From Hemiscyllium ocellatum (Eukaryota), in assembly GCF_020745735.1 (NCBI RefSeq), contig NC_083435.1, positions 18,847,231-18,911,230 of the forward strand: a stretch of DNA of 64,000 nucleotides. Reading direction: 5' to 3'. Each line of letters starts with the position of its first letter. The stretch's first letter is position 1. The notes under the pieces were generated by a model. It had not been told where the DNA came from, ran no database searches, and was given only the letters and a program-made list of their open reading frames with translations. A program made the position numbers and the translations under genes. Below are positions 46,180 to 46,890 of this stretch, one piece after another.

Positions 46180-46890
46180 AGACAGTCTCCTCCCTCTGTG
46201 TACAGATAATGTCAGACTGATTCCTTCTGCTGTGTACAGAACATGCCAGATTGTCTCCTCCGCAATTCCTCTACAGGTGATATCAGACTGACTCCTTCTC
46301 CCATGTACAGGTTGTATTAGTCACCTCCCCTATGTACAGATGATGCCTGACTTGTCACCTCCATATGTGTACAGCTGACGTCAGACGGCCTCCAACCACG
46401 CCCTCCCGTTAACAGGTGAGGTCTGACAGTCTCCTTCCTCTGTGTCCTGGTGATGCCAGACTGTCACCTCCCTTTGCGTACAGGTGACGTCAGACTATCT
46501 CCGCGCTCCGTTTACAGGTGACGTCTGGCAGTCTCCGCCCCATGTGTACAGGTGACGTCAGACTGATTCCTTCCCCCTGTAAACCGGTGATGGCAAACTG
46601 ACACTGCCCGCTGTATGCTTGTGACGTCATACAGCCTCCACCCGTCTATGGATGACGTCATACAATCTCCCTCAGTGTCCAGGTGACATCAGACTCACCC
46701 CACCACCAGTGTACAGGTGATGTCATATAGTCTCCTCCCCATTTACGGATGACGTCATACAATCCCCCCTCGGCGTCCAGGTGACGTCAGACTCACCCCA
46801 CCACCTGTGTACAGGTGACGTCAGACAGTCTCCTTCCCTCGTGCAGAGGTGAGATCAGACTGACCCCACCCCCTGCGGTGATGTCAGTGT
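46180..46890 (+). repeat. Minisatellite of about 21 units (mostly about 33-34 bp), core ACAGGTGACGTCAG
   Basis: Perfect TGACGTCA at 46376, 46485, 46553, 46622, 46653, 46750, 46782 and 46816; other units carry variants. Confidence 0.9.

Follow-up and report, generated by a model that had tools for sequence, protein, structure and literature searches.

A promoter-proximal minisatellite of LOC132832463 in the epaulette shark: kept position, changing motif content, and CREs that are probably lineage-specific

The window analyzed here, a stretch of 64 kb of Hemiscyllium ocellatum DNA, contains the first exons of a gene and, directly upstream of them, a tandem array. A protein search with the V-domain exon identified the adjoining gene (gene B) as RefSeq LOC132832463, whose product XP_060706475.1 is annotated as 'uncharacterized protein LOC132832463 isoform X4'. 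The N-terminus of this protein matches the window exactly, exons 1 to 3 were all found within it (Table 1), and the four retrieved isoforms of LOC132832463 share the same first exon. Thus the array, which a preliminary description of this DNA had taken to be the upstream region of a gene, does abut the first coding exon of a real one. An open frame running from 47230 onward proved to belong to a tRNA-derived SINE repeated across the window, and was discarded as an exon.

Table 1. Positions in the window of the array, the CpG island, the core promoter and the first exons of LOC132832463
Feature	Position	Strand	Remarks
Distal 7 units of array	46128..46370	+	CpG o/e 0.14; CRE centre decayed to TG, TA, GG or GA
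CpG island	46351..47750	.	GC >0.5, o/e >0.6; only large one in the 64-kb window
Proximal 16 units of array	46371..46908	+	Within CpG island, o/e 0.64; eight TGACGTCA and one half-site
98-bp higher-order repeat	46621..46838	+	Three units, 2.2 copies, 85% identity (TRF)
Sp1-type GC box CCCCGCCCC, perfect	46893..46901	+	In the last unit of the array
Unique core-promoter / 5' leader segment	46909..47010	+	ETS-like CGGAAG, GGTGTTnGTnGAA, inverted CCAAT
Exon 1, coding part	47011..47077	+	Signal peptide MDPRSAPVLLLLLGFLRGIAAG; phase-1 GT donor at 47078; conserved in Stegostoma (L002 13341)
Exon 2	51010..51315	+	V-set Ig domain, no cysteine pair; phase 1-1; 100% to XP_060706475.1
Exon 3	55647..55910	+	I-set/C2 Ig domain; phase 1-1; 100% to XP_060706475.1

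The product of LOC132832463 is an IgV-IgC2 multi-pass membrane protein, with 4–6 predicted membrane helices that follow the ectodomain and have no Pfam match. The ectodomain, a V domain without the cysteine pair followed by an I-set domain, resembles those of the V-C2 proteins SLAM, CD2, CD48, CEACAM, and CXADR. An immune-type Ig receptor, as we used the term, has a V-C2 ectodomain, one membrane span, and either tyrosine-based signalling motifs or a charged transmembrane residue. The earlier designation of this protein as an immune-type receptor draws only on its CD2/SLAM/CEACAM-like V-C2 ectodomain and is at most putative, given the 4–6 predicted helices and the lack of tyrosine in the cytoplasmic C-terminal tail. 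We found 33 homologues, all of them from elasmobranchs and several per genome; the names automatically assigned to them are inconsistent (HEPACAM-like, CEACAM1-like, CD48-like, CD276 homolog). The orthology of homologues in Mustelus, Carcharodon, and Scyliorhinus is uncertain. One paralogue on the same chromosome, LOC132832485, resembles it closely in the signal peptide, which is almost the same (MDPRSPPVLLLLGFLRGIAAG), and in the V domain (96% identity), but lacks the C2 domain and has a multi-pass C-terminus different from that of LOC132832463; a copy of the array may be present upstream of this gene too, in its promoter.

When the region upstream of exon 1 was parsed by anchoring on the unit core and by alignment, it resolved into a minisatellite of 23 degenerate units of about 34 bp (29–41 bp each) extending from 46128 to 46908. 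TRF, one of the checks proposed earlier, confirmed a tandem array of period 34 (46412–46862, 13.5 copies, 64% matches), and the head-to-tail arrangement found by both approaches, with units in the range of about 10–100 bp, is that of a minisatellite. The array described earlier is therefore real; its units number 23 rather than about 21, it reaches slightly further on both sides, and it ends 102 bp upstream of the annotated ATG at 47011 rather than about 120 bp, the end given previously (46890) lying 121 bp upstream. This places it within the roughly 1 kb expected of a promoter element, as judged from the ATG. It is the only large or multi-copy minisatellite in the window. The consensus of the 23 units is ACAGGTGACGTCAGACTGTCTCCTCCCTCTGTGT, and the majority are of the ...CAGGTGAYGTCAGAC type, which is the source of the eight full cAMP response elements (CREs) considered below. 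The youngest duplication visible within the array is the 98-bp higher-order repeat, between whose two best copies (a and b) about 6 of 15 substitutions are changes between CpG and TpG or CpA. The ORFs that cross the array are artefacts of the repeat, whose period of 34 bp cannot be divided by 3. Every unit from 46128 to 46908 also resembles a splice junction, with a pyrimidine tract then CAG|G like a 3' splice site and CAG|GTGA like a 5' splice site; this likeness is probably coincidental, and could matter if the array were transcribed.

The unique segment between the array and the ATG carries an ETS-like CGGAAG at 46920–46925 followed by GGTGTTnGTnGAA, and an inverted CCAAT (ATTGG) at 46941. 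The CGGAAG and GGTGTTnGTnGAA are conserved between Hemiscyllium and Stegostoma, as is exon 1. With GC above 0.5, CpG o/e above 0.6, a length well over the 200 bp used as a minimum, and overlap with the first exon, the island at this position has the properties of a CpG-island promoter. No match to TATA[AT]A was found anywhere from 46100 to 47120. In mammals, promoters with a CRE and no TATA box bind CREB constitutively and respond poorly to cAMP, neuronal activity, or depolarisation (PMC5740062). Robust cAMP inducibility there depends on a TATA box within about 300 bp downstream of the CRE, a mammalian rule (PMC5740062) that sharks may not follow; such a box is missing downstream of the CREs here, which argues against strong cAMP inducibility.

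The perfect CREB/ATF palindrome TGACGTCA occurs exactly eight times in the 64 kb, at 46376, 46485, 46553, 46622, 46653, 46750, 46782, and 46816, and all eight copies lie inside the array (span 46376–46823), as had been claimed; there are none outside it anywhere in the window. Relative to the ATG they are located at −635 to −195, and each has the full palindrome that we took as one criterion, among several, for a functional CRE. The number expected by chance in 64 kb is 0.39, and none of 100 dinucleotide-preserving shuffles reached eight. Because the copies arose by duplication, the eight sites are not independent events, and their excess reflects the repeat. One CRE half-site, TGACGTCT, is present at 46519 among the proximal units, and the exact full core ACAGGTGACGTCAG, the 14-mer given in the preliminary description, is found in only three units. 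The E-box CAGGTG occurs 11 times within the array; its overlap with CREs, previously said to be frequent, was seen for four of the eight (five of eight if CAGCTG is counted). Per-position information in the 34-bp units was 1.19 bits for the CRE/E-box core versus 1.04 bits for the C-rich tail, and the CpG of the CRE was the least conserved core position, even inside the CpG island. Selection on the CRE was therefore rejected as an account of the core, which has no clear extra constraint. A CpG this variable, in a core hardly more conserved than its surroundings, is consistent with individual CREs being under little selection or none.

The boundary of the CpG island falls inside the array, so that the array forms the 5' part of the island. 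Its proximal and distal units differ in CpG o/e accordingly (Table 1), the flanks of the island having values of 0.1–0.3 and the 64-kb window a mean of 0.29. The central dinucleotide of the 23 units is CG in nine, TG in seven, TA, GG, and GA in two each, and CA in one; ten of the 14 non-CG centres are thus TG, CA, or TA, i.e., products of CpG transition. The central CG was kept in 9 of 16 proximal units and in none of the seven distal ones (Fisher p = 0.019). Its loss from distal units, reported earlier for five of them, is true, but it extends to all seven, and among the proximal units the CG is retained by nine. The number of CpGs per unit was likewise 0.29 distally versus 1.69 proximally (p = 0.019), whereas non-CpG mismatches to the consensus were alike in the two groups (5.7 versus 6.1, p = 0.61). 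Because distal units do not differ from proximal ones in non-CpG divergence, the distal loss is CpG-specific, and the explanation that distal units are simply older was rejected. These results support the methylation-decay gradient that had been proposed at the island edge, with methylation read from its traces in the DNA: the distal loss of CpG fits methylation-driven decay there. Proximal units would be unmethylated in the germline, and distal units would be methylated and have decayed via deamination of 5mC.

The orthologous locus of Chiloscyllium punctatum (L001; draft scaffold BEZZ01002641.1, 80 kb examined) has flanks 93.3% identical to those of Hemiscyllium over 2963 bp. It holds the same distal units (L001 30318–30545), which are 92.3% identical and have the same decayed TG/TG/TA centres, so the CpG decay predates the split of the two genera. 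The single structural difference between the two distal arrays is a 68-bp indel, corresponding to exactly two units and in register. An assembly gap of 5,889 N (L001 30546–36434) swallows the proximal array and exon 1, and CREs located there would not be visible; no minisatellite scored in the assembled part of L001. An 18-base variant stretch, GGTCAGATTGTATCCTCC, is common to the Chiloscyllium units and to relic units of Stegostoma, and might indicate that the two units were lost in Hemiscyllium; this sharing is suggestive only, and the unit order is not strictly collinear. The Hemiscyllium units are only about 64% alike, and the youngest duplication among them has diverged by about 15%, versus about 7% for the flanks of Hemiscyllium and Chiloscyllium. 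Since that duplication is more diverged than the flanks, turnover in the Hemiscyllium lineage has been slow, and individuals are not expected to differ much in copy number. The deposited Chiloscyllium gene model chiPu_0020483 joins the V domain of gene A to gene B and omits the MDPR signal exon, because the draft assembly breaks inside the array. In a newer Chiloscyllium assembly, the gene model starts in a TE-derived frame of intron 1.

The locus of the zebra shark, Stegostoma tigrinum (L002; 50 kb examined), is collinear with the window, running from the 3' half of gene A through an array to exon 1. The homologous array lies at L002 11331–13200, with period 36, 52.4 copies, and 78% matches; by count it has at least 54 units of 36 bp. 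It ends about 140 bp before the ATG (L002 13341) and is the only large minisatellite in L002. Its consensus, ACAGGGGATGGCAGACTGTCCCCACCCCCGCTGTGT, is clearly that of the same unit, and the two species differ by bases nearly fixed in each, at unit position 6 (T in 22 of 23 Hemiscyllium units, G in 45 of 52 Stegostoma units) and at position 11 (T in 18 of 23 versus G in 44 of 52). The majority of Stegostoma units read ...CAGGGGATGGCAGAC, and the proximal ones carry GC boxes. The Stegostoma array contains no TGACGTCA, one TGACG half-site, and only five CAGGTG. The CRE is therefore not conserved in the orthologous Stegostoma promoter, the corresponding proximal part in Chiloscyllium lying inside the assembly gap. 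Nine perfect Sp1-type CCCCGCCCC GC boxes are present in near-identical proximal Stegostoma units; the type amplified there is that of the last Hemiscyllium unit, which has its GC box at 46893–46901. CpG o/e in Stegostoma also forms a gradient, from 0.16–0.3 in the distal array through 0.44–0.49 in the proximal array to 0.87 in the core promoter. On its distal side the Stegostoma array retains relic units that have the sequence CAGGTGAT..., with CAGGTGATATCAGAC in a single one, just as Hemiscyllium does, which suggests that the CRE-like unit was ancestral and that the bulk of the Stegostoma array may be a later amplification of a decayed variant, the polarity being deduced from these relics.

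Several further observations were made at this locus and at that of the whale shark. At L002 12917–13168, seven consecutive 36-bp units have identical tails (TTACCCCGCCCCCGCTGTGT) and two alternating head types, forming a 72-bp higher-order repeat, which would mark a recent expansion beside the zebra-shark core promoter that multiplied the Sp1-type GC box. A LINE-like insertion separates one relic unit (L002 10525–10558) from the rest of the array. The zebra-shark RefSeq isoform X1 has an upstream first exon without a signal peptide (features at L002 10001–10114 and 10560–11225), and its transcript would therefore read through the whole array as intron. The Rhincodon locus (L003) has a 5-kb gap at the expected promoter position, and no array is visible in its assembled part.

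In three orectolobiform sharks, then, the array lies between upstream intergenic DNA and the signal-peptide exon, and by taxonomy this position is kept across two orectolobiform families. Copy number has changed as had been proposed, by the two-unit, in-register difference from Chiloscyllium and from 23 units to at least 54 in Stegostoma, and this variation is between species. The array evolves by gain and loss of whole units, with different unit variants amplified in each lineage. Judged by this comparison of sequences, it is ancient and has a fixed position, a varying copy number, and a motif content that turns over. We think it somewhat more probable than otherwise that it is an ancient promoter-proximal minisatellite of LOC132832463, held in position across species, in which the CREs are lineage-specific cargo and likely a constitutive input. 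The eight CREs, the GC box, the conserved ETS-like site, and the inverted CCAAT would together constitute a putative CREB/ATF bZIP cluster in a TATA-less CpG-island promoter. The CRE cluster would most likely add constitutive, roughly additive, copy-number-dependent basal activity; a sharp cAMP switch appears unlikely, and the CREs would be cargo that the repeat carries in one lineage and not its conserved purpose. A constitutive contribution, rather than a cAMP switch, is what the lack of a TATA box and the mammalian CREB rule (PMC5740062) lead one to expect, and it has a likeness in the TRIB3 VNTR discussed below. Stegostoma has no CRE at all yet retains both gene and array, so on an evolutionary time scale the CREs can be dispensed with.

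That absence, together with the lack of constraint on the CREs, keeps a neutral account a serious competitor, which we consider possible but clearly less probable. By this account slippage or unequal exchange keeps regenerating the array in open, perhaps recombination-prone chromatin, and the CREs are copies of one ancestral site with no measurable effect on transcription. CRE positions that are conserved no better than the rest of the unit, a CRE CpG that is the fastest-changing core site, distal units evolving at the rate of the flanks (92.3% versus 93.3%), the lack of any CRE in Stegostoma, and the wholesale difference in motif content between lineages are all consistent with it. However, established CREB/ATF biology would lead one to expect that eight intact, high-affinity bZIP palindromes, 200–640 bp from the ATG and apparently unmethylated, are bound; CREB is reported to bind proximal CREs constitutively (PMC5740062), and human promoter tandem repeats are often expression and methylation QTLs (PMC4857002; PMC7425993). 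The preliminary description had proposed instead a cAMP- or stress-inducible enhancer with an output adjustable through copy number and through CpG methylation at the CREs, to which we assign a low probability. Part of that proposal stood: there are eight full CREs, the CpG-island edge does lie inside the array, copy number does differ between species, and the 19-bp CRE repeats of the human cytomegalovirus (HCMV) immediate-early enhancer do bind CREB/ATF (PMC6116278). The inducible, tunable part did not fare as well. Neither cAMP nor activity induces CRE/TATA-less promoters well (PMC5740062), and no TATA box is present here; the orthologous Stegostoma array lacks the CREs, and its E-boxes are not conserved either; and units about 64% alike, with a youngest duplication about 15% diverged, suggest a repeat that turns over slowly, unlike a hypervariable tuning knob.

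A dispersed satellite, or a tandem repeat borne by a transposable element and located near the gene by chance, we regard as very improbable, even though a LINE tail (45699–45963) and SINE/MITE-like repeats from 47365 onward flank the array. The segment from 45964 to 47365 has no second copy in the 64-kb window, and the array was found solely at the orthologous position in the Chiloscyllium (80 kb) and Stegostoma (50 kb) sequences. The flanking transposable elements differ between species, whereas the array and exon 1 are collinear. A dispersed satellite unlinked to promoters, the outcome that had been named as contrary to the promoter interpretation, was thus not observed in the window, L001, or L002. 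The two-unit pattern had no match in 2.9 million viral contigs, on which grounds a virus-like enhancer was rejected along with a dispersed element. The array gave no Rfam match; apart from the sub-threshold matches of an intron 1 hairpin repeat described below, the search gave only a chance one to a snoRNA (E = 0.94).

Promoter tandem repeats that carry transcription factor sites are already well described, and by comparison with them the shark array is an ordinary promoter minisatellite that multiplies such sites, not a conserved cAMP switch. The closest parallel is the 33-bp VNTR of the human TRIB3 promoter, which contains a C/EBP-ATF site and for which expression rises with copy number in reporters and in tissues (PMC7425993). 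Like the shark array it is promoter-proximal and variable in copy number, with a unit of similar length (33 versus 34 bp) and a bZIP site in each unit (PMC7425993). Unlike the shark array, it comprises 1–5 near-identical, human-specific copies of a unit that is single-copy but conserved in other mammals (PMC7425993); the shark arrays have 23 or at least 54 diverged units, are common to shark families, do not conserve the bZIP site, and are known from sequence alone. The HCMV major immediate-early enhancer similarly has repeated short units with CREB/ATF sites upstream of a promoter, beside Sp1-binding repeats, but there the 19-bp repeats are mixed with others of 18 and 21 bp, the core promoter downstream of them has a TATA box, and the enhancer is signal-responsive (PMC6116278), whereas the shark units are arranged head to tail in a CpG island that is cellular and TATA-less. 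In humans, tandem repeats located in promoters act as QTLs for expression and methylation (PMC4857002), and a census of minisatellite VNTRs is available (PMC8096271). These too are tandem repeats in promoters and CpG islands with a length tied to expression and local methylation (PMC4857002; PMC8096271); their effects, however, were measured at the population level, whereas the shark array offers differences between species and a methylation history deduced from sequence. The CRE/TATA-less CREB target promoters of mammals share with it full proximal CRE palindromes and the lack of a TATA box within 300 bp (PMC5740062), but they have one or a few CREs and the shark array has eight, by way of tandem duplication. 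Literature searches found no described CRE minisatellite, shark promoter repeat, or CRE-bearing promoter minisatellite of a shark.

The array is a natural experiment, in that the boundary of a CpG island runs between units that are nearly identical, and CpG decay can therefore be read separately from unit age. The three-species comparison indicates that a promoter minisatellite can hold its position across shark families while its transcription factor motifs are replaced wholesale, and it warns against assuming that a striking cluster of a single motif in one genome represents the function for which the element has been conserved. Should expression depend on copy number or on the type of motif, LOC132832463 would lend itself to studying how regulation evolves through repeat turnover in a vertebrate lineage that evolves slowly. 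More speculatively, and with rather little expectation that it will prove general, we propose that promoter CpG islands throughout shark genomes, this one among them, repeatedly spawn long-lived minisatellites that amplify and later swap whichever core-promoter motifs they contain, for this one gene the CRE in Hemiscyllium, and the Sp1 GC box together with a GATGGC-type unit in Stegostoma. Through such exchange of motifs the array would slowly adjust promoter strength, and perhaps also how far the unmethylated island extends. PRDM9 appears to be incomplete in the cartilaginous fish examined (PMC5519329), and given that state a link between promoter minisatellites and promoter-directed recombination is conceivable.

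Repeats are also present in intron 1. A near-perfect hairpin repeat at 47630–47755, with many copies on both strands across the window, gave sub-threshold Rfam matches to miRNA precursors (mir-2756, 51 bits versus a gathering score of 61) and looks like a MITE-type element, not a conserved miRNA. The tRNA-derived SINE at 47365–47466 and the repeats adjacent to it (47300–47700) have a CpG o/e of 0.63–0.85, unlike their copies elsewhere in the window, a value compatible with a recent insertion as well as with shielding from methylation.
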